Source: Intoshia linei (Eukaryota; Animalia; Orthonectida). Taken from it: 44,834 nt of DNA. The DNA lies in the NCBI GenBank assembly GCA_001642005.1, contig LWCA01000169.1:1-44834 (forward strand). The letters run 5' to 3'. The position numbers and the translations under genes are program-made. Positions within the stretch are counted from its first letter, which is position 1, and the number at the start of each line of letters is the position of its first letter. This document shows positions 1 through 43,600 of this stretch, in pieces. The notes beneath the pieces were generated by a model that was not told where the DNA came from, did no database searches, and saw only the letters and a program-made list of their open reading frames with translations.

Positions 1-111
1 AAAATTTAATATTTTTACTGACAAACTATTTAAAATACTGACACTTTACGGATTAAAATACTGACGCTATAAATACAAGCCCTTTAATGATATTCATGAT
101 TGTCAGTACTA

Positions 112-3100
112 CCTTATTTCTCCAAAAACGGAACCTTGTTCAAGTGTACCCAGCAAATGTCCTTTGTCGTCTAATACATCACACCTCCCGTATGCTATTA
201 TGTACATTTCGTTGCCGATTTCTCCCTTTTTACAAATTATATCACCTGGAGTGAAAACTGTTGATTTGAAGTATTTCATCAAATTCAATATCAGGGACAT
301 TTCACTTTTCTAATTGGTTAATAATAATATGATAATAATTTACTTCAAATAACGAAATATTTTGGATTGTCTCATAATTAACAGCAATTAATACAGTCAC
401 TTTTAAATTTTCTTGTAAAGTATCCAGATATACAAACTCGTCTAAAATTAATCATTTGTTAAAAAGTTAAAATTAGTTGCTAATATTTAATTTTCTACAT
501 GGGTTCTCAACCTTTTTAAAAGGATCACACTTTTTCTTCTGACAGTATTCATGATTCAGTGAACCCATATAATAATAGTGTAATAATAATTAAAGGCCAC
601 ATAATTGACACCCCTGATATAATTGCAATCTGTAAAGCAGGGAATAAACAATTAATAAATAACGATTCATCTTTAATTTTGTCTGAATTTCTAAATTTTA
701 GAGCAGTGGTTCCCGATTAGGGGTTCTTAAACCCCCTGGGGGTCAAAAACTATATTCTTTGGAAAAGTAGCGGATCTAGGTGGGTGAGGCGGCGATATTG
801 GTGTTTTAAAAGTCTACACATTTTACTCTCGTAAATAAAATGGCACAAACAAAATTAAAATTAAAAAACTGGAACATTCCTTAAAATGTGGTACAAAAAA
901 AAATTTCCTAAAACCCTCTAGAAAATATGATAACAAAAATCCCTAAAACTCTCTTAAAAAGATTATAAAAGTTTTTTTATTCTGAAGACGTCACTTTGTT
1001 AGATCAAAATTTTTTGTAATATCTGGAGATAATGAACTGTAATTTTTTTTAAAATTCTGGAACTATTTTCATTCTTTAAAAAAAGGGTCATTTTGGATTT
1101 TGAGACTGAATACATAACTTTTTGAAATTTAAATTTATGACATTTGTTTTTTAAACTATAGAACCCGTTTGATTTTCAAAGAAAGGATAATTAGAGTTTT
1201 TGGCTGGTAAGATATAAGTTTCTGAGATTAAAATTAATCTTAATTTCACCACCGGAAACAACTTTAATAGAAATATGTAATTTTTTAAACTCTAAGACCC
1301 TTAGTTCTTGAAATAAACGATAACTGACAGCTAGACAAACAAAGAGTTTAATATAAGTTAGGATATTATATTTTACTAGGTGGACTGTTATGTACTACGT
1401 ACAAACAGGACCTACCTCTGCAGAGGGCACATTTTTATTATACTTAAAAAATAAATTCACGTTGAAAATCTAATTTAAAAATCCTACTATTCACTATTAT
1501 CAATCCTTTAAAGGAGTGGTTCCCAAATTTGTGTCAGATGGACCATCATATCACATTACTTTTTACTTTAAAGTGAATTATTCCATCTTAATTTTTTGTT
1601 TGTTAACATTTAAAAATAAAGTAAAAACATTTCAATCCTAAAAATTGCTTTTCAAAAAGAGGGACAACTGGGGTTTTTAATCCGCAAGATGTGAGTTTGG
1701 GAGGTTGAAATTATGTTTGCGAACACCCCGGAAAAAACTGTAATTGAAATCTGGACTTTATAAAATTCTAGACGGGTAGTTATTTAAATAAAGCTGGACA
1801 CACTGACACACACATAAAAATCGCGTAGCATATTATATAAGTTAGGATAAATTATTCATTTACCCCATGAGAAGCACTGATCTAAACGGGAACATTTTAT
1901 AAAAGTAAGTTTTAAAATCTTTTTTGATTTTATCAACTTTATTCATTTTTTTTAATGATTGAACCGAGCTACAATGTACTTTACCCTTAGAAGGATAAAA
2001 GACATCCAATCATATATGCCTCTGGTATGTACAATCTACACTGTGGATAGCAAAATCTGACCCAAAACGTTTAAATTCAAAATCACCTATACAATTTTGA
2101 ACAGTCCAAGTATATTTGAACCAATTATTGACTTTTCCACATAATGTATCTGATTGAACATTTTTCATGTATTTTTTCACATTATCATTGTAATAATTGA
2201 ATTGAGTCAAATTTATATTTGCAGATAAAATAATTTCTCTAACCTAATTATTTTTAAAGTCTTACAAAAAAACTTACTTGTCCAATCAAAATTGAAAATA
2301 TAATGACCCCAAACAGCCAATAAAAAGTCATTACAAGAATCTCAAAGGTAGTTTCTACTTTTCTGACGTTACCGATAGATGAAGAGGTTTTAAGAATCAT
2401 AAAAATCCCCATTATATAACTAAATGCAAGATTACATATGCAAACTACATTTAAACGGATCATTAAATCCCGAATAAGTCCAATTATTAAGACCAATTCC
2501 CTCGTACACACTGGCTTGATAATATGAAATGGTTTGTAAATGCATCAAATAAATCATGTAGAATATATTTTTAAACAGCCGGAGCAAATAAACATTGCTA
2601 AGCCGATACTCGTACAAATCAAAAAAGTTGTTGAAAGGATAAAAGTACAATATCCTATTCAACATGAAAATGGTATGATAGTGTCCAAAATGATGAAATA
2701 ATTTAATAAAATGATCAAATGGTATTATGGAAGCAAAGGCAAGCTAAATAAAAATTTATTAACAAGTTTATAAACATCAAGTGTATAAATATATTCCGAT
2801 TGGAAATCGAATTAACAGACCAATTATTGAGAAAAATATCTATAAATGTTGAAAAAATTAAAAAAGCAAAAACTAACAAACCTGAAAAATTAGTAAGTTT
2901 CTGACCAAGATTTTTTCATGAGTAGGACCAAAAAGTCTAATGTAAGCAACGATAATTGTAAAATTACTAAATTCTAATGAATCATTTTTATCACTGAAAA
3001 AATGGTAGATTTTCAAATTAAAATCTCGCTTGTCGATTTTAACATGCACTAGTCCAAATTTGTAAAACATGTAAAGTATAAATCTTCCAACATTCCCAAT

Positions 3101-5717
3101 AAATTGTAAATTGCTTGACGCCATGCTCATTTCCAATAAATTAGTATTTTTGTTAAGTTTTGGAAGTCGGTGTCGAGGACAAGGTAAAAATTTAAATATT
3201 TGAGGACACGAAAACAAAAAATTAATAATTTGAGGGACCATGAGCAATAGTAAAGTTTTTGAAAAATGTCCAATTATTGAAACGGATGAAAATAAGACCC
3301 CAGCAAAGTAACAATATGTGTCTCCGACAAATATCTTTGCGGGGTATTTGTTCATTCGGTAGAGAGGCACAGAGATAATAATGAACGGGAATGTAATCAT
3401 ATAAACAAGAATAGCATTCTCTATGGAAAATTCATTGACGATATGAGCTACCATTTCATAAATAATTATAAAAATGGCAATTATAATAGATTGACCAACT
3501 TCTATCCCATTTACTCCAGCCAAAATATTTACAGCATTTGTCGAAAATATAATAAGCATCGACATGAAAACATAGTATAAAATTCCTAGATTGCAATATA
3601 TTACAGTTGAACCCATTTACCTATATCCATATATGCCACAGTAAAAAATCTGAGAGGCCACGGTATTTTTATGGAAGTTTGATCAAATGTTATTCGGTAA
3701 ACCATCAGTAACGGAATAGAGGCAAATAATGGAAAACACATCTTGTGTTTCCATTTTAAATCCAGCACGTCATCTATGAACCCAAGAAGGGTTATGGAAG
3801 TAACCGATAATAGAATTGTCAAAAATTGAATTAGCTAAACGTTTTCAAAATAACAAATGAAATTTTAACGGTACCTCTTCAAATGGATTGCCTAAAAAGT
3901 TGTGGGCAGAATGGACAAAGTAATGGTATATTGGTATACACAAAAACAAAATTATTATGTAGTAGATTGCAGCGAATACTCCTGTTCCTTCTGATCTTGG
4001 AATAATGTTTTTAAATTTAAATTAATTTCAAAGTACATTTTTATTTTTGAAGTTTTATTCATATCAATCCCGTAAATGTTTGCATCTATCAACATTTTTG
4101 AATATGTGGGTAAGGATTTCCAAAGGTGGTAGGTTAAAATATACGTAATTGCCAATAAAATTATAAAAAAATCAATATTGTAGTCAAATATCATCTTTAA
4201 TTTTGATACAAATCTTATTGAGTTTGTTTGATAAATTTGAGAAATAAGTTTGTCGCATGCTATGGAAATCAACTTGGTTTAGAAATTAACAAAAATTCTC
4301 TAAGAAGTAGAAATTTTGAATTTACAATTTAATAACCCGGATTTACATTATGTACGTTATTTTAACACATTGGGACTCTGACACGTTTATGCGTCAAAAT
4401 TATGTTTCGAATATTTTTAAATTCGTAATTTCAAAATAGATTTATAGCCGTTTCCATGAATGGATTATTAGTACCTTTGGCTGATGTTGTAGCTAATGTA
4501 TTTGACTATCACTTTTCTAAAAACATTTTTCTCGAGTATAGTTTTGCCAACAATTAATTAAAAAATTTTTAAAATTTGAATTAAAAAAAAATACATATAT
4601 TAATAATTATTAATTAATAATATATTATTTAAATTAACAATTATTTAATTAAATTATATATTATTTAAAAATTAACTATATTACACAAAATAGTTATGAT
4701 ATTCAGAATATAATTTTTTAAATGCTCAATTTGGGTAAATGGCCCAGAGGGACCTCGGAGTAAAGTAGGTTAGGATCTGCTTGTGATACACACTAATTAT
4801 AATTAATGATTTAAAATACCTTAAATTGAAAAGATTTCAAGTATTCTTTATACAAAAACCTCACATCAGTCTATTGAGTAATTTAAATTGCATTATATTA
4901 CAAGATAAAATTGTACCTTTAAATATCCATTGAATAATTTTCTAACTGTAGGAAAAATCCAAAAAATATCAATAATGTAAATAAAATCTGTAAAAATATC
5001 AACATAAAACCAAAAATTGTCAAAAACAGAGTAATTGGTTATGAAACAATTAATGTCGGTAACATATTTAACATTTTCTACGGAAATGGCATTTGATTTG
5101 TACTTTTGTTTTGTAATTATAATATAATTGACTAAAAGTTTTTGCAGAGTAATGGCATCTTGATTAGTAAAGTTCCTTAAAATATGATCAAATAATGTTA
5201 CCGACCCGTTATTTTTTCTATAATATTTGAAAGAATCAGCCAACCCATGATAATGGCTATAAATATCTAATTTAGCTTGATCAGTGAGACCTTTCAAACT
5301 ATTCTTATTATTTGGTAAAAATGTTTCAAATAAAAAATTATAAGAACACTCTTTTTCGTTGACATTTTGGATATCATGATAATTGAATTCTGTCGCTTCA
5401 ATTCCATAAAGTCCTTCCAGTTTCTTATTGAATGAAACTATATATTTATTTTTACAATAAAAAGAATAGGAGCATGATTCAGTGAAACCCAATCTGAATG
5501 GTATAGTGAAAATCTTGTATAAGAATGCTAAGAATATGATCACACACCATATTTGATATATTATTGATTCTCGGTTTATTGATGCAATCGGAAAGTTGTC
5601 TTCAATTTTTTTTTCCTTTATTATCAATACATTTTTTAAATTTTCTTTACTAAATTCAAAATTTCGTATTGGTTCTACTTTACATTTTTTTTTAATTTTT
5701 TTTAACTTGACATGCAT
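112..5717 (-). CDS. Cyclic nucleotide-gated channel, beta-type (CNGB/TAX-2-like) subunit; multi-exon, 3' end runs off the left edge
   Basis: Exons approx 5717-4917 (S1 YQIWCVIIFLAFLYKIFTIPFRLGF; S2 WFYVDIFTDFIYIIDIF), 4870-4820 (TDVRFLYKEYLKSFQFK), 2743-2457 (S3-S5 LAFASIIPFD...YYQASVYEGIGLNNWTYSG), ~2419-2278 (pore KTSSSIGN, S6 FGVIIFSILIGQ), ~2243-2087 (C-linker), ~441-344 and ~309-112 (CNBD FTPGDIICKKGEIGNEMYII...GSVFGEI). GT-AG junctions are phase-compatible where checked. The pore lacks the alpha-subunit TIGE glutamate. Confidence 0.9.
830..1363 (-). mobile_element. Helitron-family copy, 5' part (left boundary approximate)
   Basis: Same A|TCCTAACTTATA 5' end at 1363. Internal blocks are shared with 6303-6800, 10680-11260 and 40043-40400. 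Confidence 0.6.
1376..1847 (-). mobile_element. Non-autonomous Helitron, complete copy
   Basis: Minus strand reads A|TCCTAACTTATATA...(TG)n...hairpin TGTTTGTACGTAGTACATAACA...CTAG|T, with no TSD. Similar to the copy at 31331-31748. Confidence 0.8.
2755..2760 (-). terminator. Putative polyadenylation signal AATAAA of DPAGT1
   Basis: tttatt on + at 2755-2760, 16 nt after the DPAGT1 stop and 9 nt before the host AG acceptor (2745-2744). Chance matches are common in AT-rich DNA. Confidence 0.6.
2777..4194 (-). CDS. DPAGT1: UDP-GlcNAc:dolichyl-phosphate GlcNAc-1-phosphotransferase, nested in the CNG channel intron
   Basis: ATG at 4194. Motifs GIDMNK, SEGTG, LLGFIDDVLDLKWKHK, FSTNAVNILAGVNGIEVGQS, YPAKIFVGDTYCYFAG, GHFSKTLLL, CPRHRLPK, GPTHE. 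Last exon IFFSIIGLLIRFPIGIYLYT ends in TGA at 2779-2777. Short introns. Confidence 0.96.
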
Positions 5718-6302
5718 TCTGAAACAGGAATATAAATAACTATTAAAGCATTATCAATATCGGTAAATATAAATAGGATGTGATTAATTATTTTGTGACT
5801 ACCCAATATTTAATCAATACAATTTACAATAAATTTGATATATAATTATATAAACTTGAAACGAATATATAATTAAGGAATATTAATAGTAAATATATAT
5901 CATCAACATGCACTGCAAATTACGTGTACGTATTTTAATTTAAAAGTATTTTACTAATTATATCCAACAGCCTACATGTATTTTTTATATATAAGAGGGA
6001 GTGAATAATTATTCATTATAGGCAGTTTGAATAGTAGAATTGTAAAATACAATTTCTGGAATTAATTATAATATAAATATTTAATTATATTTTGGTACAA
6101 AAGTAAAATTAATTTTTTGTTAATAACACAGTCCAACAAAAAAACAATTTTTTTAATGAAAGAGTTAAATTTAGTGCACCTTGAAGATATTTGTTTCTTA
6201 ACAAAATCAAAATTTTGTTCATATAACGTCCAGAGTTTTTTTAAAATACATCAAATTTTCGAAAAAGTGCCTAAAATAAGCATATTTGTAGGTCGTTAGA
6301 AA

Positions 6303-6800
6303 TCCTTAACTTATATAACATGGAATGTCTGTGTGTGTTACCGTATATTTAAAAAATTAACAATCGTAGAATTTAAAAAATCCAATTTCTAATACAGAAT
6401 TTCGCAGAGATATTGATATCTATTTTTCAGTTAAGAATTCGAGTCATTCAGGGTCAAAACCGCATATTACCCTTTGTTTTAAAAATTAAACATGTCCTAA
6501 AATTTTATCAACATAAATTCTGGCATACTTTTTTAAATCATAAGAATTATCATAAATAGCAACCTTAAAAAAGTGCATTTTCACGATCAAAACCCAAATT
6601 ACCCTTTTTTTAAATGAAAACAACACTAGAAATTTTAAAAAAATTACAGATGATACAGTTATATTCAGTTAACACACACAAAAAATTTCAATCAGCAAAG
6701 TGACGCCTTCACGGTTAAAAAAGCACTTTATAATAAAGTTTATTATTCATTTTTTTATTTCGAAACTATTTTAATTAAAATAAAAAATTTAAAATTATTA
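6303..6800 (+). mobile_element. Helitron-family copy with internal ~120-bp subrepeats (3' boundary approximate)
   Basis: Starts A|TCCTTAACTTATATA...TGTGTGTG. Repeated units of the form GGTCAAAAC..ATTACCCTTT..CCTAAAATTTT; shared AAAGTGACGCCTTCACGGT block. Confidence 0.65.
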
Positions 6801-8023
6801 ATGTGGTACAATTGAAAAAAGATTATTCTGATACAGCTTATTCCAGTTGATATAAATACAAAATTTAAACCTCAGAAATCTACGCATTCTTGGTGAAAAA
6901 TAACTTTTAATATAATATCAATCAATATTTTTTCTAATGTTCTACAATTTTGTTATCATCATTTTTATATTTATTACAGGGGTGCCCACACCTTTTTTAC
7001 AGCAGACCGGTAATAAATTTATCACGGATCGTTAGATTGAAATTACTGAGCAACCTTAGAAAAGATTTAATAAAAAACGTATTAAATTGACTTTTCATTT
7101 GTAAAAATAAAAATTCGGTGCACACCCCTAACAATACGACGCTGCGCCACTGATAAAAAGCAATTATTAATGTCAATTAACGAAATGCCATTAGAGTATG
7201 TATTTAAAAAACCCAGCTTGATTTTAATTTAGATCAATAACGTTTAAAGTCATATGCAGCTGCAAATCCTAGATAGTAGAGATAAGTAAAATTTTACCCT
7301 AACAAATAATATAATGAAATAAGTGGGAATTACTTTTTTTAATCTATAATATTGCAACTTGCTATTCATAGACGATAAGGATAAGAAAAAATAAAAATTG
7401 GTAATCATGTCAAATACAATAAAAAGTTATCGGCATCCATTTGATTTTGTAAATTACTTTCAGACAGCGTTAATTTTTAAATGTACTTAATTATAAAAAT
7501 TATTGCTTAATAGTGTTCTTTTTGTATTTTTAATAAAAAGAGAAACAATTAAACATTATGTTTTTACATGCCAATAACTTGACTGTTAAAATGAATTGAA
7601 ATGTCCAGACTATTTGGATATACACTTGTACTTTTTAAAAATGATAATAATTCAATTTTTATCATTTCGAAAATTATCAATTCAATTTTGACTTTAAATA
7701 CAATTGCCTAATCAATACAATTGAAAATTAACAAGTAATGTTTTAATTTTGTAATATGTAATTACTACATTGAAAAATAAATACCGACACGCACTTATTG
7801 ACATTTATACAATACATCACTGTCACTGTAAAATGTTGGTTTGACTCGGTTTGTTGCATAATGTTAATTCATTAGGGATGTTTAGTTTACTCGATACATC
7901 TCATAAATTTAATGCAATTTATTGTCTCATTAAATTTCATGTTTACAAGTTAAACTTAAATTGTTTATAAATTAATTTGTAGGAAAATTGTTTCTAAATA
8001 CATATTATCAAAATTGGTTTATA

Positions 8024-11000
8024 ATGATTACAGAAAATGATGAATATTTGGTTCAAAATTGTCACGGTATGAATTATTCTTTTTTTATATCATTTTATCA
8101 TTTTATAATTATTTTTTGTTAATAATCATTTTTAGTAATTAAAAATATGAAAAAGAAAAAATATACTAATTTTAAAGTACCTCTAAAATATCATACCGTT
8201 AATTTCAATTCCAATTTAATAAATTTCGATTTATCTAATCGGTATAGATCCAAATTTGAAAAAACCAATAGAAATAAAAAAAAATCTTCATTCGTCTCTA
8301 GAGAATTTAAAAAAAAATCTTTTAAATTTTCTAAAAACAATTTAACAAAATGTTTTAAATTTCAACCTGATTTTAAGTTGACACATGAAAATCAATTTCG
8401 TATCTATAAAAGAGGTTTAATTATTTTTTTTCGTTTTATTGTTTCTTAGATTCTGATCCAAATTTTTATGAAAATACAAGTGTTAAAAGAAATTTGAATT
8501 GTTCTGACAATTGTTATTCCGGTAATGTATCATTTATAATATCTATATTAGGATTATTAATGGGTTGGGTTCATCAATTTAAATTTAATTTCAATCAGTT
8601 AGTTTATTAATAATTATTCATTTATCCATTATCATTTATTTATTTATATCAATTTATTCGATTAAATCAAGGTACTAAGATTTAAGACTTGCATAAATAA
8701 AAACTTGCATGCTTATGAATTTGCTACACAATCAAAAATTGTGAAATATTAATAATAAAAAAAATTTTTAATTAAAATAACGTTCCCCAATTTTCCATAT
8801 AATCGGTCCGACCGGTGGGCGCAAATTTTTGTCAACACTAAGGTTTGATTTTTTTAATAATTTAAAAAATTTTAAAAATGAGACTGGTCATAAAAATTGA
8901 TTATAAACATAATTAAAAGAGAAATAATGGACACTAAAATGTATAATGAAAATTAAGATATGAGGCACTTTAAAAATATTTCAATATTCATGTTTGTAAA
9001 TTGACTTCACCGTATTTGCTTGCCAGATTCGATACGGGCCATTTCCCAGTTTATAAATAAAATTACTTCCTGTTAATTCTGTTTTTTGTTATTTCATAAT
9101 TCAAATCATTAATTTTTAGAGAACGTATACGATATGGCAATGCCGTCCATGAAAGGTTATAATAAAAATGTTCATTGTAAAAGTTTTAACTCAATTTTAT
9201 TAAAAATATATATTTCATGGAATATTTTAATATTAATCAATAATTTCAAGGTATATCAAACACTCTACCCAAAAGAATATATTATTCAAATGATAGAAAT
9301 AACCCGTCGATGGGAATGATTAAATTGAATAATGAAAAAGGCTCATTGAACGGTTCATTAATATATATTATTTAATTTGAATGTACATTGTAATTCATAA
9401 AACAATACACGGGTTGACATTTATCTGTTTCAGTTAAAAATTTTCTTGGTGTATCCACCCATACCGACCGTTAATATTTAAAAAATATTTTGTTGACTCA
9501 TACAATAGTCGTCTCATACACGGTCTACGGGGTTACAAGACTCCTGACTTTTTATTTCGCAGGTTATCGCAGATCGGCGATCTTATAAAATTTTATAAAT
9601 AAAAATATTTCATCTTTAATATTTAATAATAAATGAAAATTTTTAGTTGTGAAACATGTTGGAGGAAATGATTTAAAAAATATAAACAGATATGAAAATT
9701 TACCATTTAAAAAATATGAAAATATTCAGTAATTAAAAAATGTATATAATGTAAAATTTGTATAATTAGAAACATAAAAGCACTACGCCAAAATTCAAGG
9801 GAATCTATAAAATTACCAAATAAAAAGTTATTTATGTCGACAATAATATTTTCATTGGCAATGATTTTAATTTTTACGTTCATCTGCTTATTTGGTAATT
9901 TACAATTTATAATAATGTTAATATTGTTATGTATAGTAGCAAGTTTCATGCAAAGTAGAGGCAATTCTATACAAAATAACCTTCTCTCTACTACACCTAG
10001 CATAATCAATTATAATAATGCTAAAAACGTTACACAGGATTATTCCATCACTGGTTTTATTGAAATGTGGTCATCGGTTTTATACATTTTAAAATGCAAA
10101 AAGCTCATTAAAGTGCAAGTTGAAGCTCCATTTAATAATTTATTAATTTATGGTAAATTAAATTCAATTCCAACCATATACGATTATGATTTCATTAAAT
10201 ATGCTCGACCGAACATCAACCTTAATAATGTAAATTATCAAAATGTCGACCCTGATTTATATACAAATGATTCACACGTATTGGACATTTATCACGAAAA
10301 AAATGCTTTCTTTCTGTCAGATAATATTTGGTATCTGCGAATTTATAATGATTTTTCAACAAAAGCTAAATATCAATTCACTGTAGAAGGTGTCAATGGA
10401 AAATTAGATAAAGGTTAGATTTGTATCAAATTTCAGTTGTAAATCATTTTAAATGATTTATTGCTACATAATTTTTCAATTAATTTAATTTAATTATATC
10501 CAAATGTTAGATAATATATTTATAATGATAAGGGTTAATAACTTTTCTATTTAAGGGAGCCTTCATTATTCCGTTATTTACTCAAAAAAACTTTAGTTGT
10601 ACTGATTTTACTGATATTTACAAATCCTCCATTATTTGCCAATAATTTTTCAAAATAAGTTAAAAAAATGTGTTGATATCTGTTTGTTCCAGTTTATTTA
10701 AGAAGGTAAGAGGAATCGAGATGTAAAATTACATATTTCTATTACAGTTTTTTTAGAGTCATGTTTTATAGAAAATTTCATTTTTAGAAATTAAGCCCTT
10801 CAAGGTCAAAAACCCAATTGTCCTTTTTTTTAAATTCAAATACGTCCTAGAATTATAAAAAATACATCATTTCATTAAAAACCACATGCACAACATGGAA
10901 AAACCACAAATTAATTTTTTTGTAAAAATGAAAAAAGTCCTAAAATTTTATAAAACATAAATTCTGGAATAGTTTTTAAATCATAAACATTATCATCAAT

Positions 11001-14000
11001 GGCAACTTCAAAAAACTTCATTTTCATTATCAAAACTACAGATTACCCTTTTTTTAAAAAATTAAAACAGCCCTAGAATTTAAAAAAAAATTACAGCTGA
11101 TATAGTTATATCCAGTTTTCACGCACAAGTCATACACAAAAAATTTTAATTAATCAAAAATTTTAATTTGACAAAGTGGTTTCTTCACGGTCAAAAAAAT
11201 ACTTTAGTATACATTTATTTTTATTCCTAATCTATTTTATCAAAACAAAAAATTTGAAATAATTAAGGATTATTTTTTTTGTTGATTCAATTGCTTATGA
11301 GATATTTCCAAAGTCGATATATAATATTAATGAAAATTATATGCATGTGTATCAATTAAAAAATAATATATTTATCACTGTTTATCTTTCTTTTTATTTG
11401 TTATTCTTTCTTTAGAAATTTATATTTGTTTTTATTATTTTTTAAAACACCCCTAACTGAATTAATCGCCCACTTTAGGAACTCCTGATCTACATTGTGC
11501 ACAGAGACGAAGTTGTAATATTTAAGACCCAAAAATTCGAATTTTTTTTTAAAATGCTTAATTCGGAAAAATGAGACCCATATTCTACAAAAATTATGTT
11601 GAAACATTTATCAGGAATAAAATATTGTATGACAAACATGAAAATTATGTCTATAATTTCTAAAAATTTTTTATATACTTTATTTAGACAATCTGAGAGA
11701 TTGCCCTTATTATTGTTCCGGAAATGGAGCATGCATAAATGGACAATGTCAGTGTTATAAGCGATTTACCGGTTGGGATTGTTCTGAATGTAAATTACAT
11801 ATTATAAAATATATATTATTTCAGCCATCTGCTTGGTATTATGCTCTAATCATGGTGATTATGAAAAAGGAACATGCCATTGTCATAATGGATGGCATGG
11901 AGAAGAATGTCAGCTCAAATTTAATTGTAATATTAGTCCATGTTTAAACGATGGAATATGTATAATTCATAAATGTTTATGCAAAGATGGATTTAATGGC
12001 ATCTACTGCCAAAAACGTAATACATTAAAAACTTTAGATTTTTTCTGAAATTTTTTTCACTGGCGCAAAAGATAAGCATCTAGATTCATTTTTGTTATAA
12101 TTATAACTATTGATGAAAATAAATATTAGATGGCAGTAATGGTTAAATTTTAGAAGGGTAATTGAGAAGGAAATTGGAATAAAATTAATTTATATCAGTA
12201 CGTAGGAATGGGATACTGTATCGGAATTTTATCTAGTACTAAATATTTTATTTGGGTGAGCCTGATGGCTATTAAATTCTTAAACCCATAATAATTGATA
12301 TTCACTATCAGTACTGAAACTACCATATTCAGAGACTATACCAGTGATTCCCAACTTTTGTTTTAAATTTACACCAAATTTTGTTTTTTTTCAATTATTT
12401 TTTTAAATATGACAACCTTACAATGTGCATGTTCAACATACCAATTTTCATAAATTTTGATCTTCAAATATAATTGTTATTAACAAAATCATAATGTTGT
12501 TATAATTATTGGAGGGAGTGTATAATCCACACTGTCCAAATAAATTAGGAATAGGGCCAACAAATTTAATTTTGAAATTGAACAAAATTGTTCTCTACCC
12601 CACTTTTTAAATCTTTTTTCAATGTATTTCCCGTTTTATTTTTATAATTGATAAACTGTAAACTCTTAATATTTTTTTTAATAATTAATATTGCGACTAA
12701 CCAGTGGTCAGTGACCACACTTTGGACTAGACTGCTATAGATGAATAATGCTAATAATATAACTCATTAATTATACTTAGCTATTCAAATTTAATTCTTA
12801 GAGATCTGCAATACATTAAAATGTCTACATGGCATATGTCATAACAGTGTTTGTTATTGTGATGCAAATTATTATGGAAATAATTGTAATAATTCTATAG
12901 AAAATTTACCAAAAGCAAAGCAAATGAAGCAGCATCCAATTATCATTAAAGGTATTCTTATAAATATTTAATAGTATATGTTAATGCTTCATTAGATTCT
13001 TGCGAAAATACCTGTATTAATGGACAATGTGTGCAATCAACATGTCGCTGTAATAAAGGTTGGACTGGAAAAATATGTAACGTTGTATCCTGTAATATAC
13101 GATGTAAAGGTTTATGTGTGAACGGTCAATGTATTTGTGAAAAAGGGAAAAACGGTGAATTTTGTAGTTTAGGTAAATTTTGACATAAATTACCGCTAAA
13201 TATAAATAATTAATAAAACTTTGTAGAGGGCTGTACAAATAATTGCAACAATCATGGAACCTGTAAAATATATGGAAATGTATGGCAATGCACGTGCTAT
13301 AGCGGTTGGTCAATGAGTGACTGTTCCGTACAGACTGAATTAATCTGTGACGATTCTTTGGACAATGACCACGGTTTTTAATGAATTATAATTTAAACCA
13401 ATTGGTTCCTTTTTAGATGGTTTAATTGACTGTTATGATTCTGATTGTTGTATATCAGCCCATTGTAACATAAATAGTAATTGTGAAATATTACCCAGTC
13501 CCACCAGTTTAATATCGAAAAATTCAATGCATTCTCAAAGTTTTTACGAAAAGCACAAAAAATTTTTATTGAATGGACTGCAACTATACACTTTAATAAA
13601 ATTTTTCCAAAATAGGTAGAAAATTGTAAAATTAATTTTACTGAATGAATGATAATTTAGAAGAATTTTAATTATATCTGGAAAAATTGTACAACAAGAT
13701 CAAACTGCTATAATTGGTGCTCGAGTGTATGTGAAAAATTTAACAAACTTGGGTTTTACCTTGAGCCGTGAAAATGGAAAGTAATTTTAATTTGGTCAAT
13801 TTCAATTTTGTTTTTATTTAGATTTGATCTAATGATTCCATTTTATAGAAATTATATTTCCCTTTTTATACAAAAAAACTATTTTGTTGATGCTACATTT
13901 AATTTACATTTACCGTATTTCGATAATGTATATGGATTAGAAGCAAATATTGTATTAAACAGTTTAAAACAAAACTACAATGCATTTAAAGACAACGACT

Positions 14001-17000
14001 ACTCTTTTTGCGGGAATATTAATGAATTTGATGTGCCTCAAATTGAACTAAAGTATAAGGAAATTGATGATGTTTTAAATATTCCCCTGATTAAGACTAA
14101 TTTATTGCTTCAATATTCCCAATCATTAACATGTAATTTACCTTTGCTTATAATAATACACATTTTACCTAATAAAATACCCATTCACCTCAAACATGTG
14201 GAAATTTCAATATCCATTTCAGGAAACGTTTATAAACGTATATTGGAGGCTAAGGAGAGTTTAAATTTTAGGGTTATGTGGAATCGCAAAAATATATATG
14301 GAGAAAAGGTGTATGGTGGAATACTTTCTCATGTTGTTATTGGATATTTATTTGAAAATTGTACCAAAAAATTGGTATATAAACAATTGTATACGTTACC
14401 GGCATGCACATTACCACATACCTATCTATCTGGGATGTCTTTAAATTATATTTATAAATATGATTTTAATTATGGTTATTTATATGGTGCGAATGGAATC
14501 AGGACCAAAAATTTGATACTATTTTATAATTTACTCTATTTTGACAGTGATACATTTGCAATTTATCCATTTTCATTTAATGAAAACCCTACAAATATTT
14601 ATTTTGTCTTGAAAATGACGGGTATTTTGAAATTCGAACATTATGTGGAATTCAAATCGAAATTGGTTTATGTCAAAAATTTAATACATGAATATTTTTT
14701 CAAGTTTAACGAGATTGATCAAAAATTTTATGTTTCTGGAGATGGCCTTTATAGTTTACCAAAATATGACATGGAAAAAAGTAAATTTCATTGGACAGTT
14801 ATTTCAAATAAAAAGTGCAAATTTATTGGGTCATCCTTATGTGGAAATAATGAACATGTCGGTAATTCTTCTTTTTATTTTATTAAGGATTTCGACTTTG
14901 ATAAACACGGAAATGTATATTTAATAGATGGACCTGTCGTAAGAAGAATTGGTAATACAAATAAAATTATCACACAAATAACGAATTACTCTTTCCATTA
15001 TATGTATACCAAAATTTGTCCATACAAATATATACCATTTGACAAAGTATACCTTGAAAATCCCCAAAAAATTATGTATAACGGATTCTTAAATCTTTTT
15101 TATATTTTGGACAATCATTTACTATTTGTGTTGGATATCAACAACAATTTGGGCTATTATGTAAATGGGGAATATTCAAAAGAGTGTTTCTTGGATCAAC
15201 CGCACCACTTTTACTCTTCAAAGTTTTTAAAAAATATTATAGATTTCTGCGTGTACTATGATTCAACCTTGTATTATTTAACGAGTGAAAATGAAATATT
15301 TAATTGTATTGATAACAATAATGTTTGTATAAATGAAACTGAAAAATTTATTAAATTCTGCTCAATAAAAAATGAAATTATTAAAAAAATATCCTGCAAT
15401 AATCCAAAAAGGGAATTATACATTTTTATTAAATCAAATTTATCAAAGACCTCCACAAAATTATGTACATTAAATCCGCAAATTTTAAATTCAAATTTAA
15501 AGCTTTTTAAAACGTCCAGTCAAATAATTCCTAATAATACCAGAAATTTAAACTTTAAATTTCCTAATCAAGTTATTGAATTGGATAATTTAAATAGATT
15601 GAAAAGTATTGGTTATATAAATTATTCTAAGAATTCAAAATATAAATTCATAAATGCTACTTACATAAATAATGAAAATTTAAATGTAAACAACATTTTA
15701 CAAATTCCGTCTTTAAAAAGTTTAGGTAATATTATGACCTCTGAATCTAAAAATGTATCAAATTTAAATTCTACTCAAATAATTTCCACCGTTTTAAAAT
15801 TTTTTGATACTGTAAAACAAAGATTGCTTATTAAAGCTGAAATTATTGAAATGTATCCTCATTATCTCGATATTTATGGCTTACAAAAGACTAATATAAA
15901 AAGTGATATGTATATTATCAAAGTTTTAAAAACCCATTTTATTTTTTCTTCAGAAAGTGACGTCGATTCTACTCAAAAATATACTTCTACGATGATTAAT
16001 AAACTCATTGATTCTAAAGGAAATTATTTTGAATCAAAAATAATGTATCAAATTGAAAATGAAAGATTTGGTTATTCTAATGTTTTTAATGCAAACTTAC
16101 AAAACGTTAAATTTAAATATGGTTTTCTTGAAACAATTTATTTGATCAACAGCTTAAATTATCCAGTATTGAAGCATCAATTAAAATCAGAGGTATAGTT
16201 TTAAATTGCAAGTACATACATTGTCATTATGGTACTTTTTCTCAAATTATTTTGGTTTTCTTGATAATCACTACCTTCTAGTGCAGGCTTTTTTAACCGG
16301 GTGCTAGAATTAATTTCAGGGGGCTAGAAAAATTATTTAAATTTATGTGAATTCAAATTTTTCAAATACAGTTTAAAGCGACTATTCATTTTTATCATTT
16401 ATTAATGTTATTGATTATATTCGATATTAAGGTGGCTTTTAAAAACGTCAATAAAATATGATTTTTACGTTGAATTTTAAGGTATCATTTTTTTATTTTT
16501 GAACTTACCGTACTCCGATATCACTCTTCGAGGTGGTATCGACGAAATTTTTTTACATGGGAGCCTTATTTTTTCCCATTGAGCATTAAAAAAATTATTT
16601 TCTTGAATATATGTATAATAACTATTTTGTGTGTTAAATTTAAAATGTAAAGTCGAGAGCCTTAGAAAGGTGGCTTGGGGAAATATGACACAACGCATCG
16701 TTATCAAAACAAATTTTTTAGGGGATTATTTTTTATTTTCGGGTGGAGTCCAGTTGGATAGGTTTGGTTTTGTACAGGGAGTTAGAAATAATTGATCTGG
16801 CTAATTGGATTGCTATATTTAAAAAACTTTAATAAACCCTGTTCTAGAAATAATTGACGAACATTTTGTAAACTAGGAAGCTCATTTTTTCAATGTCATA
16901 ACTGTTTTAATCCATATAAACTGCCATTTCAATCCCTAGCAAAAAATGACTTTTACCAATATTTTTTGAAAAATCTGATGTTGACAAATGTACCTTATGA

Positions 17001-20000
17001 AAAACATCAAATTTTACCAATGCTTAAGGGAAATACCCTTTTTTTCCAATATTTTTTTGATAAACAAAATTTTACCAAATGTTATAAGAAAACCCCTTTG
17101 ATTTTTTCATTAATGTTTTATATCTCATGTTTCCCTTGGGTCCAATTATGTTTAAAAGCAGTGCATTTATTATCTTTATAAAGTTAAAAAATGCACTCAC
17201 AATTAACAATTCAATAATTTAAATTATTGGCCAATTGGTAGCCGAACGATTTGAAACTTTTTGTTTTTTATTTCAGAAAAATGTATATTATATATTAAAT
17301 TTTAGGTAATCTACCAAGAAAATTACATTAAAAAATATTGTAAACATGAATTTAACAGTAGTGGTCATTTGATGAAATTACAGTTTCCAAATTCATCAAT
17401 TTTGATAAAATATGATTATACTTCAATTAACTTTATGCCGACAAAAATTGACTACATTTATTCAAATACAAAAAAAACGTATATAATAAAATACGATGTA
17501 AATTTTGACATTTATCAAATAAAAACCCCCATGCAGAGATGTTTAAAATATAAAGTAAACAATTTGTTGAATAATATAATTACGATTGATTATTCACTTG
17601 GGAAATGCAATGAAAATTCAAGAAATGATGATAACAAATCAAAAAATGATAATATTAATTATATTTCAAAACAATTATTTCACAAAAAAAAAAAATATTC
17701 AAATATTATTTTTGATATTATAAAATTCAACAATTTTTATATTGAAAAACTTAATTATACGAACAAAAAGTGGGTGTGTACTTGTAGAAATTCTTTTAAA
17801 GTGTCTAAAGAAAATGTGATGAAAAACATGAATCATATCGTCACTGTTTTTCTGAAACTGGAAAAAACCATGAAAAAAGAGCCATTTCTATTTCCAATTA
17901 ATGCGTCAAATTTCCAACAAAAATTAAATTATGAAAATTTATCTATCGAAATTTTTATCTACCCGGAATTTAAAAATAATAAAACCTCCATTATTCCTAC
18001 AAAAAAAATTTGGCTAAGTATAATGGAAAATTATACATCAATCCATGTAAATTTGAAAAATATTAAATCAAATCTAATAGTGATGAAACATGATTATGTT
18101 CTAGTTCGAAAGATGTCTCAAAACATTAACATTAGGGTTAAAAAATTAAATCTTGTCAATTTAATTTCTTTCGATTCTATTGAAAATTGCTTTAAAATAC
18201 GATATAAAAAATTTACCAATTTTCGATTAAATGATTTTTGTTATTTTCTTGAAATAAATTTAAAGTATTGTATTAAATATTATTTTGAAAATGGCGTCAT
18301 GATTAATTTGATCGATGAGAAAGTTTTACACCAAAAAAGTATTCAAAGGAATTACAAGTTGGAGTATGATGATGATTCAAATTTAAAGTATTTGTTTATT
18401 CAATCTAAACGTTATAAAACTTGGAATTATCATCCTTCCGGAAAATTAAATTATATCCACGTGAATAATGGCACTGTATACATTTATTATAATAAACTCG
18501 GACAAATTTCTAACTATTCAAACAAAAAGTTTATATATGATAAGTTATCCAGATTAGTTTCAATCATTTACGACAATGGAAATAAAATTGGTATGTACTA
18601 TTTGTTAATTCAGTCAACAAACGGGTCCAAGGATTTTAGAGGGTACAAGAATGGGTTTTTTCAACAAGAGATTACCAGCTACCTTTCCCATAAAGTGACC
18701 AGCCCTAATAATAAATACATTACAATTACAATAAATTTAGATTTTTATTACGATGGAATGAATAGACTACAAACAACAATAGAACTAGAAAAGGGTTATA
18801 TAAAAAAGGTGTATTATTTTTATTTCCATTCAAATAATGATATTTTGTGCACCAATATTTTAATTGAACAATTTAATCAAAAATTAATATTCATTACATT
18901 TGAATATGACAAAAATGTAATAACCTTTACCAAGAAAATATTAAAACCTGGCAATCACAATTTAACTTTGCACGGTGTTTATAATGAACAATACAAAATA
19001 TTGCTAGACACGTGCGCATCACCATTTGCAGTGTATAAAAAAACGGGGGAATGTACGTGGAAAAAACACATTAAAATTAATTTTAATCCAATTGGTGAAA
19101 TTGATTCAATTTGTAAGTTTTCAAATGGAAATGAATGTGATATCATTAAAAATGGAGCGAATATATTAGAAGAATTTTACATTGGATATTGTGGCCATTT
19201 ACAAAATTACAAGCATAGTGTTTCAATTAATTTTTTAAAACAAGTTGAAATACCCATAATATACGATACGTTTATTGGAAAATTTTTGAATGGTGGACAT
19301 ATCAATTTACTTCAAAATTTGGGAAAATTTGTTTACAACCCGGCAAACATAGCTTCAAATGATTTTATGATGTTATTAAATGGTAACATGAAGCTTTAAT
19401 AATATATAATTCATTTAGTTCATAAATATGATACATCCAGTGAAACGAACGATGAGGCTCAGCTGATAAACGATCGATTTCTTCATTATGATCAAGTATT
19501 TCCTAGTTCTTTCAATACAGTAAATTCAGTGTACATTCCATTTTATATTGATAAAGACAAAAATTTTGGAATTGATCCGTTAATTGTTACTTACAAACAT
19601 GCAATGAATAAAAATAAAATTTTCAAAGCACTTATAAAAAAGTTTAACATTTTATTGGTTCAAATAAAATATGCATTTGATTCGATTAATCCGCAAATGT
19701 CTTTAATTCGAAAAATTACTAATGAAACTACATGTAGTACGGGTTTTGAAAATTTTGGTAATTTTATTTATATAGATAGTACCAGTGTTTCTCAACTGGT
19801 GTAGTCAGCGAAAAAAGCTAGTTAATATTTAGTTGTTCGCCAACATATTTGAATTAATTTCAAGTACGCCCAATGGAAAAAAGGTTAAGAAACACTGTAT
19901 TATAATTATACAATGGTTGTTGAAATAATGAAAAACATACTTTTTTTATTTAAGTCAAAAAAATTATTCAAACTATTCCCTGAATAATGAATATAGATAA

Positions 20001-23498: not shown

Positions 23499-24782
23499 TT
23501 AATTATTAACAACATAGTCGCAAATTTTGAACAAGTTATCGGTAAATATAGAAAATGAAAATTTTTCTTGAACAAGATTAATGCTATTTTTAGAAAATTT
23601 CGAGTAAAGACTATCATTAGTGATTATATCATACATGTATTGAGAAAATTGATGTGGATCATTATCACATAAAAACCCTGTTTCATCATGAACAATCGTT
23701 TCCATTGGCCCTCCACTATTGTGTGCAATCACCGGACACCCAATAGCCATGGCCTCAATAGGAACAATACCAAAATGTTCATATTGTGGGGTATATAAAA
23801 TGCACCTTGACCGTTTATATAAAAATCGTTTCATATTTTCATTAATATTTTTTAGAAAAACAACATTTTCATAAATATCTAATCTGTGCGCCATATCCGT
23901 CAATTCCTTATAATATTCAATATTTTCGGAAAGTCGTTCATCGTAGCCGCCAGCTATAACCAAATGGATATTTTTTTTAATCAACTTGTTGGAAATGAGT
24001 TTATAAAAAGCGGCCAATGCTAATACAATATTTTTCTTTTTTTCAAATCGATTCACACTGGTAATAATGACGTCATCCTGAGAAATTCCAAGTCGTTTTT
24101 CGCAAACATCGGCCTTATATTCATCATAATTTGAAGTACAAGGTACAGGATGCAGAATGACAGCATGTTTGTCGATATCTAACAAGAATTTTTGGGCAAT
24201 TTCGAGAGTATATTTGGAATTTACGATAATAAAGTCTGCTAAATTGGTAGATCGTCTCTCCCACATATTTATGAGTCTACGGTAAATAGCAAAACCATAA
24301 TCAGTATGGAGTTTACAAAGCAGCATATCCGGATAATGGCAATAAAATATTGTTTTGTAATTAAATAATCGTAGTATTGGAATAGCAGATGAAACCTAAT
24401 TGGAATATATTAGTTTACGCGTAGCATAATTTACTTGATCAATAATGACGACATCTACTTTTTTTGTTTCACTGATAATTGGAAAAAAACGATAGAATAA
24501 GTGATTACTTGTTGTTCTGAATAAGGCTATAAATATGCTGATCAGCATTATATGAAAGAATGCCAAAAGTGCATGGAATTTTCCAAATATATGTCTCGGG
24601 AACCAGTTGCAGACGGTAGTAATTTTAAATTTCTTGGTTTCTTCAAAACACCGATTTCTATCATAATGTGCGACAATAAATTCAACTTGCATATTTTTTG
24701 AAACGAGGGCTTTAGCACAATTTATCATTGCCAATTCCGCTCCGCCTATACCCAAATCAGAATGTACAAACGTTACCAACAT
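23499..24782 (-). CDS. ALG2: Alpha-1,3/1,6-mannosyltransferase
   Basis: FVHSDLGIGGAE, HYDRNRCFEET, DQ|VSSAIP (39-nt intron), FYCHYPD, SVNRFEKKKN, AGGYDERLSENIEY, YTPQYEHFGIVPIEAM, NSGGPMET. Confidence 0.96.
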
Positions 24783-40659: not shown

Positions 40660-43600
40660 TTAGTGATTTGAGCCATACTCTGGTTGTTTAATGTGTTTAT
40701 CTTCGATATGGTTGGTTGAAAAACTTTTCATTTTGGTATGTTGACTTAGATCTTTAAGTTGATAGAAAGGTTCGATAATACAAGATTTCATACTCTTGGT
40801 GTCTTCGCAGAGAGTGATTAAATCTTCAATGTTGTTTGATTTTTCCAGTTGGCTTGATAAATGGATTCTAACTCGTTTTTTCTCTTCTTTTTTTGATTTA
40901 AAATGTAAGTTCAATTCAATATCACAACATTTACAGCACATGCATTTTAATTTATTCAACAAGTTTCCACATGTTTTTTCATTACTTAAAGATTTAAAAT
41001 CATCAATTTTATTTAATTTTCTGTATATGGGAATTATGTTCATCTTGGTTTTCTAAAAAATGTATATATTGTATTATGGGAAATGTATTACTGTAATATG
41101 TTCAATAAGATCTATTATTTTGTATTGGATCAGAATTTCTGGTTCAGTATAATTGGATTGATGTGGTTCACTTAATTGCATTTTATTTGATTTGATTAAC
41201 TGTTCCAGGGTGCCTCGTTTTTCGGTAAATATTTTTAGTTGGTTGTTGTTTATGATGGTTTGTCTTGTTAAATGCGCAATCTACGATTACATTATGTCCT
41301 GTTGATAGGGCAAGTTTTTTAGTAACCCATAAATAAAACAATCTCATGATTGCTTTAATGCAGCGGTTCCCAAATGGGGTACTGGGAATTATTTTGGGGT
41401 ACCAGCTCGTCTGATACTATGCCTCATAAATTATAGATATTTTTTAAATTCCCAAAATTAATTTGTAATAATATACTTAGTTAATTTGATAGTCTCTGAG
41501 ATTTTAAGGTTGTATATTAAATATGTATGTATGTACGTATCTATTTCGTCATTAAATTTTTAATTATTTTTTTTCAGTTTAGGGGTACCAACTGTGAAGT
41601 ATGTTGGGAACCGCTGGTTTAATGAAATAACAAATAATCCAACTACTTGTGAATATTTCGGTCTTTTTTTTAGGTCAATAAAAAAATTTCCCTAATTATA
41701 TTTTTATGTATCTCATATATTTTTACTTTTTGGGATTGTCTTTTGTCTGAACGTTGACTTTGTTGGTATATTCGGCTAAAATTAGAAACTATTACAGGTA
41801 CTGGTAAAGCAATAACTAGAACACCAGACAATGAACACAGACCTCCGATGAATTTACCAAAAACAGTTTTCGGTACCATGTCTCCATATCTAAATTTCAA
41901 TTAATTTTAAAATGATAATGTTACCCCAATGTAGTCATTGTTACAATTGTATACCAGAACGAAGCCGGTATGCTGGTAAATGTTGTTTTTGCTTCATTTT
42001 TTTCGCAATAATACATCATTGTGGCAAATATTATAATTGCCAATGAGAGCGAAAAAAGCAGGAAGCACAACTCACTAGCACAACTAAATGAAACGTTATA
42101 TAACTGGAATAAGCTCTATCAGAATAATCGTTTTTTTTAATTGTAGGACCATTAATTATTTCAAATTATTTATTTTAATAAAATAGTTTCGAAATAAAAA
42201 AAAAATGAATATTAAAGTAATTGGTTGACCGTGAAGGCGTCACTTATTCAGATTGAAATTTTTTGTGAGTCTTAACAGGATACAACTGTACCATCTGGTT
42301 TTTTTAAATTTTAGGGATGCTTTTATTTTAAAAAAAATTGGTATGTGGGTTTTGATCGTTAAAATTATATTTTTTTGTTTCCATTTATAACAATGTTTAT
42401 GATTTTAAAAACTATCCCAGAATTTATGTTTAAAAAAATTTTAGGATGTTTCATTTTTAAAACAAAGGGTAATTTGTATTTTTGACCATGAAGGTATGCG
42501 TTTCTGAGGCTGAGATTAACGACAATGTTAATGATTTTAAAACGCGTCTCCGAATGTATTTTATTACATGTTTAGGCTGATTTTTTTTAAACAAAATGAA
42601 AAATTGGTTTTTGAATTTATTGTATATTTGAATTTTATTATATTGTTTTTTTAAAATCCTGCGACTATCATTTTTTTCAATAAATGGCTACACATACTAA
42701 AAAAAACACACAGACATTCATTTTTATATAATTTTAAGTAAAGGATTATATAAAATTTTCATTTTCAAAAATTAGTCCTTCAAGGTCAAAACATAATTTT
42801 CCCACTTATTTTTAAAATAAAATGATAATATCGATGATTATAGAACAATTCGTACATCTCAGCCTCAAAAAAGTACATTTTCAAACCCTAGATTATCTTT
42901 TTCTAAAAAATGTACAGATCATACAGTTAACATGCACAAAATTTAGAATAAGTTGGAAGGATGGTGTATTAAACGAAGAATGATTGATATATTAAAATAA
43001 TGCATCCTCATTTGAATTAATCCATCTGATTTTGACCTTTTAAATTATCAATATAATTTCATTAATACTTTTATAGTTATTTATAAGCACATACTGTAAT
43101 ATTGATAAATGAATTTATGAATCTACCAGCATTATACATATACAAAGATTTTAAAACGTTAACTCTAGACTCTAAAATACTCAAAATTTTCAATTTTATG
43201 AAACTACTCAATTTAATTTAATTAAATTTGCTTTTATAATTATTTCCATTCAAACGCAGTTTAAATGATTTAGTTTAATAAAACGGATCTATATTCTATA
43301 TCAACAATTAATTACCTTTTAAGGGTGTACCCCAATATTCGCAACCCTACAACGATAATTAAATTGTATATATTAAACGTACCGGCAGAGTGTCTTGAAA
43401 ATTTGATGATTCTAAAAACTCGAAATACTCTCAAAGTGACAAAGACATTTCCTAATGTGTTTTTGTTAGGCATAATTAAAGTAATATAATAAGGTACAAT
43501 CGCCACAAAATCAACGAGTGACATGAAATTTCTAAAAAATTTGATTCTATGAGGTGATGAATACAATCGGAGAATATATTCAACGGTAAAAATAATAACA

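Follow-up and report, generated by a model that had tools for sequence, protein, structure and literature searches.

The locus examined here raises the question of whether a housekeeping gene, DPAGT1, sits whole within one intron of a channel gene on the same strand, and how both RNAs could then be made. DPAGT1 is the first enzyme of N-glycan synthesis, a GlcNAc-1-P transferase of glycosyltransferase family 4. The window is a stretch of 44,834 nucleotides of the orthonectid Intoshia linei (contig LWCA01000169.1), and both genes are carried by its minus strand (Table 1). From the sequence comparisons that follow, we have good confidence in a true same-strand pair of host and nested gene, in which a CNG beta-type channel gene with an ancestral intron 2 is the host and DPAGT1 the nested gene, with predicted transcription, splicing order, and poly(A) site.

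Table 1. Features of the channel gene and of DPAGT1. HMM numbers are positions in the channel profile.
Feature	Position	Strand	Description
Channel exon 1	4917..5717	-	ATG at 5717; S1, S1-S2 loop insert of ~150 residues, S2; HMM 126-181 and 185-221
Channel exon 2	4820..4870	-	51-nt micro-exon, 17 codons TDVRFLYKEYLKSFQFK, phase 0 at both ends; HMM 224-239
Channel intron 2	2744..4819	-	2,076 nt; GT 4819-4818, AG 2745-2744; encloses the entire DPAGT1 gene
Intron stretch upstream of DPAGT1 ATG	4195..4819	-	23% GC; presumed promoter and 5' UTR
DPAGT1 exon 1	4037..4194	-	ATG at 4194; matches Helobdella DPAGT1 residues 3-41
DPAGT1 exon 2	3875..3995	-	Matches Helobdella DPAGT1 residues 44-72
DPAGT1 exon 3	3621..3834	-	FIDDVLDLKW motif region; PF00953; human DPAGT1 residues 103-167, E 9e-14
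DPAGT1 exon 4	2882..3585	-	Main catalytic part; PF00953 E 5e-17; human DPAGT1 residues 162-389, E 4e-54
DPAGT1 exon 5	2777..2839	-	TGA at 2779-2777; matches Helobdella residues 376-394
AATAAA	2755..2760	-	16 nt past the DPAGT1 stop, 11 nt ahead of channel exon 3
Channel exon 3	2457..2743	-	S3-S5; HMM 242-328, E 2e-24; human CNGB3 structures E 8e-11
Channel exon 4	2278..2419	-	Pore helix, filter, S6; HMM 331-379
Channel exon 5	2087..2243	-	C-linker; HMM 379-432
Channel intron 5	442..2086	-	1,645 nt, full of interspersed repeats (dozens of copies, 80-96% identity)
Channel exon 6	344..441	-	C-linker; HMM 430-464
Channel exon 7	113..309	-	First part of cNMP-binding domain; PF00027; HMM 467-531
Next channel exon, other contig	G000:C261 35581-35417	-	HMM 532-582, E 2.4e-13; 91 nt from contig end

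The channel gene and its second intron

The channel gene has at least eight exons, which encode S1-S6, the C-linker, and a cNMP-binding domain. A channel HMM was built from 30 reference CNG proteins, and the exons are colinear with it over profile positions 126-582, with the core, C-linker, and cNMP-binding domain in order. All of the channel splice sites are canonical. Exon 1 is an open frame of 285 codons whose 3' end reads ...NGYLK before the donor GTACAA, exon 2 lies between an acceptor AG at 4872-4871 and a donor GT at 4819-4818, and exon 3 opens with LAFASIIPFD... at 2743 after the acceptor tttatttag. Stops occur at a frequency of 0.074 per codon on the minus strand, so the frame of exon 1 is far beyond chance (p ~3e-10); for exon 3 the value is p ~4e-4. 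The cNMP-binding exon on contig C261 is intact and has the phosphate-binding motif NKRTATV with its conserved Arg-Thr-Ala. A 23-nt exon at 66-44 (VSILIRK) was dropped from the model, the true next exon having been located on that contig.

The two halves of the channel are continuous across intron 2. The join of exons 2 and 3 is in phase 0 on both sides, and the two exons lie back to back in the profile, showing that nothing is missing between them; the first two residues of exon 3 are unaligned to it. A CNG paralog in the same genome has no intron at this point and reads ...FVKSIHLKISLLSIIPTD. A second frame resembling exon 2, at 4273-4208 (HMM 223-244, 1.8 bits, E 0.67), is a chance match with the wrong phase for the available acceptor, no donor, and low complexity.

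Comparisons made on exon 3 indicate that the channel is a beta-type subunit (CNGB1/CNGB3-like), nearer to beta than to alpha subunits. Its nearest named relatives are CNGB1 and CNGB3 of insects, molluscs, and vertebrates, and among human structures CNGB3 and CNGB1 (3e-9) are matched more strongly than CNGA1/2/3 (4e-6 to 1e-4). The channel host is a probable sensory gene. PF00027 is matched at 39.4 bits (cut-off 27.5), and single channel exons gave no match to PF00520. A PDB search with exon 1 gave no significant match, and S1 and S2 were placed by profile search alone. The channel sequence has diverged far, being about 35-40% identical to the nearest relatives, and its S1-S2 loop carries an unusual insert. 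When exon 3 was searched library-wide against protein collections that leave out records of the Intoshia linei genome, no match exceeded about 50% identity.

The intron itself has a counterpart in an oyster. The CNGB gene of Pinctada contains a 51-nt counterpart of exon 2 (L010 8442-8492), equal to it in length and phases, with 8 of the 17 residues identical, and the exon after it begins FDFLSLLPLD. The intron at the matching position is 117 nt long, versus 2,076 nt in Intoshia linei. Exon limits are common to the two genes at Pinctada CNGB residues 260, 352, 399, 451, and 551. The comparison indicates that the host intron is an ancestral phase-0 intron, older than the nesting of DPAGT1.

The DPAGT1 gene and the origin of the nesting

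DPAGT1 is complete within intron 2, with five exons and 419 codons followed by TGA, on the same strand as the channel (4194-2777 inside 4819-2744). Its introns are all GT..AG, with lengths of 41, 40, 35, and 42 nt. PF00953 is matched by exon 4 at 62.8 bits and by exon 3 at 34.3 bits (Pfam gathering cut-off 27); in the genome search the scores were 67 and 30.7 bits. The closest solved relatives of these two exons are human DPAGT1, and bacterial MraY reaches only 1e-7; exon 1 alone had no PDB match. With exons 1, 2, and 5 aligned to Helobdella DPAGT1, the gene is colinear with DPAGT1 from end to end. PF21383, the DPAGT1-specific insertion domain, was unlisted for exon 4 at E <= 0.01, as it is for many named DPAGT1 orthologs, and the stretch concerned aligns to the human protein (PCPRHRLPKLN...). 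A protein search with exon 4 found nothing above 49% identity in collections that likewise leave out the Intoshia linei records. Two metagenomic contigs carry the best DPAGT1 matches; these have no channel neighbour, and their source organisms are unrelated.

Other features of the intron are a repeat and a possible processing signal. An interspersed repeat of about 75 nt lies at ~4662-4741 and has 304 first-look candidates in the genome. Past DPAGT1 exon 1, the sense strand has no AATAAA other than the one at 2760-2755, a putative DPAGT1 poly(A) signal. No non-coding RNA genes were found in 1-7000.

The sequence-only reading had joined the exon at 4870-4820 to the one at 2743 in phase 0 and had placed an entire multi-exon DPAGT1, in the same orientation, in the 2076-nt intron between them. 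The coordinates and phase of this predicted join held, in agreement with the profile, the uninterrupted paralog, and the oyster homolog. The second claim is borne out by the five-exon model, the PF00953 matches, and the matches to human DPAGT1. That reading had also proposed synteny in relatives as a check, and this was informative: in two annelids the genes on either side of DPAGT1 are unrelated and it is outside any channel gene, and the oyster has the host intron as well.

The distribution of introns and neighbours suggests how the nesting arose. DPAGT1 is present once in the small, AT-rich genome (41.6 Mb, 3,520 contigs), and all four of its introns are at positions common to the DPAGT1 genes of Helobdella and Lamellibrachia, which marks it as the ancestral gene rather than a retrocopy. 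Since DPAGT1 is not nested in the two annelids, the nesting arose in the Intoshia linei lineage, within an existing intron. Intron 2 would have grown to its present length by taking in the sole DPAGT1, its four ancestral introns, and some repeat DNA. Capture by a transposon was considered and rejected, the insert having no flanking terminal inverted or direct repeats.

RNA processing and alternative explanations

The layout of the locus suggests a simple route to both RNAs. DPAGT1 would most likely use a promoter of its own, located within the 625 nt before the ATG, and its transcript would most likely end at the AATAAA. Cleavage would then fall at the edge of host exon 3 or slightly within it, so the DPAGT1 3' UTR may reach into that exon. 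Channel transcripts would run through DPAGT1. The four mini-introns would be removed first, as self-contained units recognized by intron definition. As long as the DPAGT1 poly(A) signal goes unused, the host donor at 4819 would then join the sole remaining acceptor, at 2744. The lengths of the mini-introns are usual for a short-intron genome, as introns of Intoshia linei have a reported median of 57 bp (PMC6543705). It had been claimed earlier that the channel RNA has to cope with every DPAGT1 splice site and the poly(A) site, and that this implies promoter- or cell-type-dependent processing coupling the two genes. The channel RNA must indeed pass these sites, but the mini-introns, at 35-42 nt, would come out as self-contained units and no special skipping mechanism is required; the proposed coupling received no support from the tests run. 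A recent insertion of DPAGT1 would leave both channel halves open too, and this counts against the reading as a true host and nested pair.

Only 35 nt hold the DPAGT1 stop codon, the sole AATAAA of that gene, and the acceptor of the host, and cleavage and host splicing may therefore be mutually exclusive. A regulated splice-or-cleave switch, in which one RNA site is either cleaved to end DPAGT1 or used to join exon 2 of the channel to exon 3, is a tentative and rather unlikely extension of this layout. If it were true, the 3' UTR of DPAGT1 would overlap a channel coding exon, and the routes to in-frame chimeras (4819 to 3834, and 2882 to 2743) would need active suppression.

The position of the poly(A) signal just upstream of an acceptor that the channel would need would also fit a channel gene that DPAGT1 disrupted when it arrived, leaving the two halves unjoined and the gene a dying pseudogene. 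The high divergence of the channel and its odd loop insert point the same way. Such decay is improbable, however, because all eight exons are open at the stop frequency given above, every splice site is canonical, the cNMP-binding exon keeps its Arg-Thr-Ala motif, and DPAGT1 was placed in an older intron and not in coding sequence.

Alternatively, DPAGT1 could be an alternative 3' module of the channel promoter, with donor 4819 spliced to the AG at 4196-4195 so that channel sequence is joined in frame or serves as a 5' leader. This AG stands directly before the ATG (ttaaag, then ATG), and the phase-0 end of exon 2 would keep a fusion in frame. It would set two channel helices ahead of the DPAGT1 N-terminus, though, and the acceptor lacks a pyrimidine tract. 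Dependence on a channel promoter is also unlikely for a housekeeping enzyme encoded by a single gene copy. Trans-splicing and operons are reported to be absent in annelids (PMC7854359), which is a further point against this arrangement, and overall it is very unlikely. An operon or trans-splicing reading was likewise unsupported by the literature found. An assembly artefact, in which a chimeric join put the DPAGT1 segment within the channel gene, is conceivable in so fragmented an assembly, where a contig end cuts the channel gene itself, but it is extremely unlikely given flanking exons that are colinear on one strand, insert borders free of long repeats (the sole intron repeat is a short internal element), and a DPAGT1 gene that is present only once.

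Comparison with other nested genes

The arrangement of DPAGT1 and the channel is a real gene within a gene, of an ordinary and well-known kind, and same-strand nesting is common in animals. The sequence-only reading had treated an excess of antisense nested genes as established. This overstates the case, as same-orientation nesting is common among mouse and human pairs, antisense is only slightly favoured, and the two orientations are 'broadly similar' (PMC11694760). The locus resembles the same-orientation pairs of mouse and human (PMC11694760) in that one host intron encloses a whole gene that has a start, introns, a stop, and a poly(A) signal of its own, and in that this intron is far longer than the other introns of the host. 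In contrast to those pairs, the scale is far smaller, with a host intron of 2.1 kb and nested introns of 35-42 nt, the 3' end is extremely compact, the stop and AATAAA of the nested gene being so close to the acceptor of the host, and transcription of the two genes is predicted here.

Other nested systems show what a poly(A) signal in an intron can do. Premature host polyadenylation or intron retention is described for the hosts of imprinted retrogenes (Wood 2008 and Cowley 2012, as summarized in PMC11694760), and premature polyadenylation or retention of the host intron for intronic L1 elements or nested genes (Kaer 2011, PMC3192792). As in those hosts, a sense-strand poly(A) signal in the host intron can compete with splicing, and here it stands only 11 nt from the acceptor; isoforms were measured in those systems, whereas in Intoshia linei the layout of the genes suggests the competition. 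The gene OMP, in an intron of CAPN5, is also similar, and PMC6549253 describes the two as differing in cell-type expression. In that account the sensory-neuron gene is the nested one; in Intoshia linei the roles are reversed, with a housekeeping gene nested in a probable sensory gene.

The pair of DPAGT1 and the channel leaves the knowledge of nested genes in general unchanged. For annotators of the compact Intoshia linei genome, it means that same-strand neighbours may be wrongly fused or split. The locus is also a compact natural system in which to study how splicing and polyadenylation compete. Overall it provides a clean, datable case of how one gene becomes nested in another: in the orthonectid lineage, an ancestral intron, of 117 nt in the oyster, took in a whole housekeeping gene together with its introns.

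The nested DPAGT1 gene and its origin

A complete DPAGT1 gene of five exons (419 codons plus TGA) lies on the minus strand within the second intron (2,076 nt) of a CNG beta-type channel gene. Its four introns (41, 40, 35, and 42 nt) are all GT..AG. The window (contig C787) is invertebrate rather than human DNA, with about 21-32% G+C, and the introns modelled in it are very short. When the whole genome (41.6 Mb, 3,520 contigs) is searched with PF00953, the Pfam family of DPAGT1, this locus alone is found, so the genome has one copy of this essential enzyme. Database searches were run on single exons, one at a time.

Features of the window and of the adjoining contig
Feature	Position	Strand	Remarks
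Channel exon 1	5717-4917	minus	profile positions 126-181 and 185-221
Channel exon 2	4870-4820	minus	profile positions 224-239
Channel exon 3	2743-2457	minus	profile positions 242-328
Channel exon 4	2419-2278	minus	profile positions 331-379
Channel exon 5	2243-2087	minus	profile positions 379-432
Channel exon 6	441-344	minus	profile positions 430-464
Channel exon 7	309-113	minus	profile positions 467-531
Next channel exon	G000:C261:35417-35672 region, 91 nt from C261 end		profile positions 532-582, E 2.4e-13, includes NKRTATV
DPAGT1 exon 1	4194-4037	minus	aligns to end of Helobdella DPAGT1
DPAGT1 exon 2	3995-3875	minus	aligns to end of Helobdella DPAGT1
DPAGT1 exon 3	3834-3621	minus	passes PF00953; human DPAGT1 structure residues 103-167, E 9e-14
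DPAGT1 exon 4	3585-2882	minus	passes PF00953; human DPAGT1 structure residues 162-389, E 4e-54
DPAGT1 exon 5	2839-2777	minus	aligns to end of Helobdella DPAGT1
Teneurin (TEN_NHL, FN-plug, GBD domains)	9834-19399	plus	neighbouring gene
GT1-family glycosyltransferase (PF00534)	23499-24782	minus	neighbouring gene; possibly an ALG-type mannosyltransferase
Kv channel (BTB_2 T1 domain and Ion_trans)	43312-44710	minus	neighbouring gene

The closest relatives of this DPAGT1 include annelids and other invertebrates. All four introns are at positions that also hold introns in Helobdella and Lamellibrachia, and three further annelid introns are absent. The shared positions rule out a retrocopy: this is the ancestral gene, which was relocated or engulfed at the DNA level. 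The DPAGT1 neighbours in the two annelids are unrelated genes, a HAD hydrolase in Helobdella or Lamellibrachia and histone H2A plus RPL28e in the other species, so the nesting is derived in the lineage of the window. The borders of the insert gave no sign of misassembly or transposon capture. A histone H2A gene adjoins DPAGT1 both in Lamellibrachia (L009 9218-9571) and on an unrelated ENA contig (L005 5056-5448); human has the same linkage (H2AX-DPAGT1).

The channel gene and its introns

The channel exons map colinearly on a CNG profile made from 30 full-length relatives. Exon 3 is nearer human CNGB3 and CNGB1 than alpha subunits, and the database proteins closest to it carry the names CNGB1 or CNGB3. 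The gene runs off its contig (C787) at position 1 and resumes near the end of contig C261 of the same assembly. The two contigs therefore adjoin, and the core, C-linker, and cNMP-binding domain of the predicted channel are all complete. Short TACTGACA / GTCAGTA motifs are found at both contig ends (C261 end, window 1-112) and probably broke the assembly. Exon 1 has about 150 extra residues between S1 and S2 (5031-5480, minus). Their frame is open; they include a number of Cys residues and N-x-S/T sites, have no match in PDB or Pfam, and may form an added extracellular domain.

The intron bearing DPAGT1 is an old CNGB intron. Channel exon 2 by itself is too short for significance (profile E 3.9); the CNGB gene of the oyster Pinctada imbricata has an exon with the same place, length, and phases. 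The oyster exon (VSWD01000012.1, L010 8442-8492; 51 nt, AG/GT flanks) reads TDIRLTRKYYWKKSMFK, with 8 of 17 residues identical, and is followed by a 117-nt intron and an exon beginning FDFLSLLPLD. A CNG paralog on contig C2844 of the same genome (...FVKSIHLKISLLSIIPTD) is uninterrupted at the exon 2/3 point. Four further exon limits are common to the channel and oyster genes. The public oyster model KAK3086855.1 omits the conserved 51-nt micro-exon present in the DNA.

Stops occur on the minus strand at 0.074 per codon. The open frame upstream of DPAGT1 has 285 codons (p ~3e-10), those downstream have 103, 96, 77, 49, and 66 codons, each improbable too, and every channel splice site is canonical. 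An old disruption of the channel gene by DPAGT1 is thus unlikely, whereas a recent one is still conceivable.

The long introns of the channel gene seem to be those that acquired insertions. A second one (442-2086, minus, 1,645 nt) is full of interspersed repeats, including an element of about 285 nt with dozens of copies on other contigs (89-96% identity). Between channel exon 2 and the DPAGT1 start is a relatively GC-rich repeat of about 75 nt (~4662-4741; 304 first-look candidates in the genome), which is neither a tRNA nor an Rfam family.

Transcript processing and comparison with other nested genes

Channel transcripts would have to read through DPAGT1. Its introns are self-contained mini-introns, which intron-definition splicing would remove first, leaving 2744 as the sole acceptor for the donor at 4819. 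In-frame chimeras are also conceivable: that donor (phase 0) could be spliced to exon 3 or exon 5 of DPAGT1 or to the pre-ATG AG, and channel exon 3 could be spliced to the donor of DPAGT1 exon 2 or exon 4. The real hazard would be the predicted DPAGT1 poly(A) signal. Past DPAGT1 exon 1, the sense strand has a single AATAAA (2760-2755), located 16 nt past the stop codon and 11 nt ahead of channel exon 3, which should place cleavage at or within that exon. An acceptor-like AG directly precedes both start codons (5718-5723, tttcag/AATG, channel; 4195-4200, ttaaag/ATG, DPAGT1), a possible sign of introns in the 5' UTRs. A literature search gave no evidence of spliced leaders.

The pair belongs to the known class of host/nested genes. 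More than one-tenth of mouse and human genes are involved in such pairs, usually with the nested gene in a long host intron; the frequencies of the two orientations are "broadly similar", and premature polyadenylation of the host has been linked to nested genes (PMC11694760). Compared with the mouse and human pairs, the DPAGT1/channel pair is set apart by being very small and by the tight packing at its 3' end.
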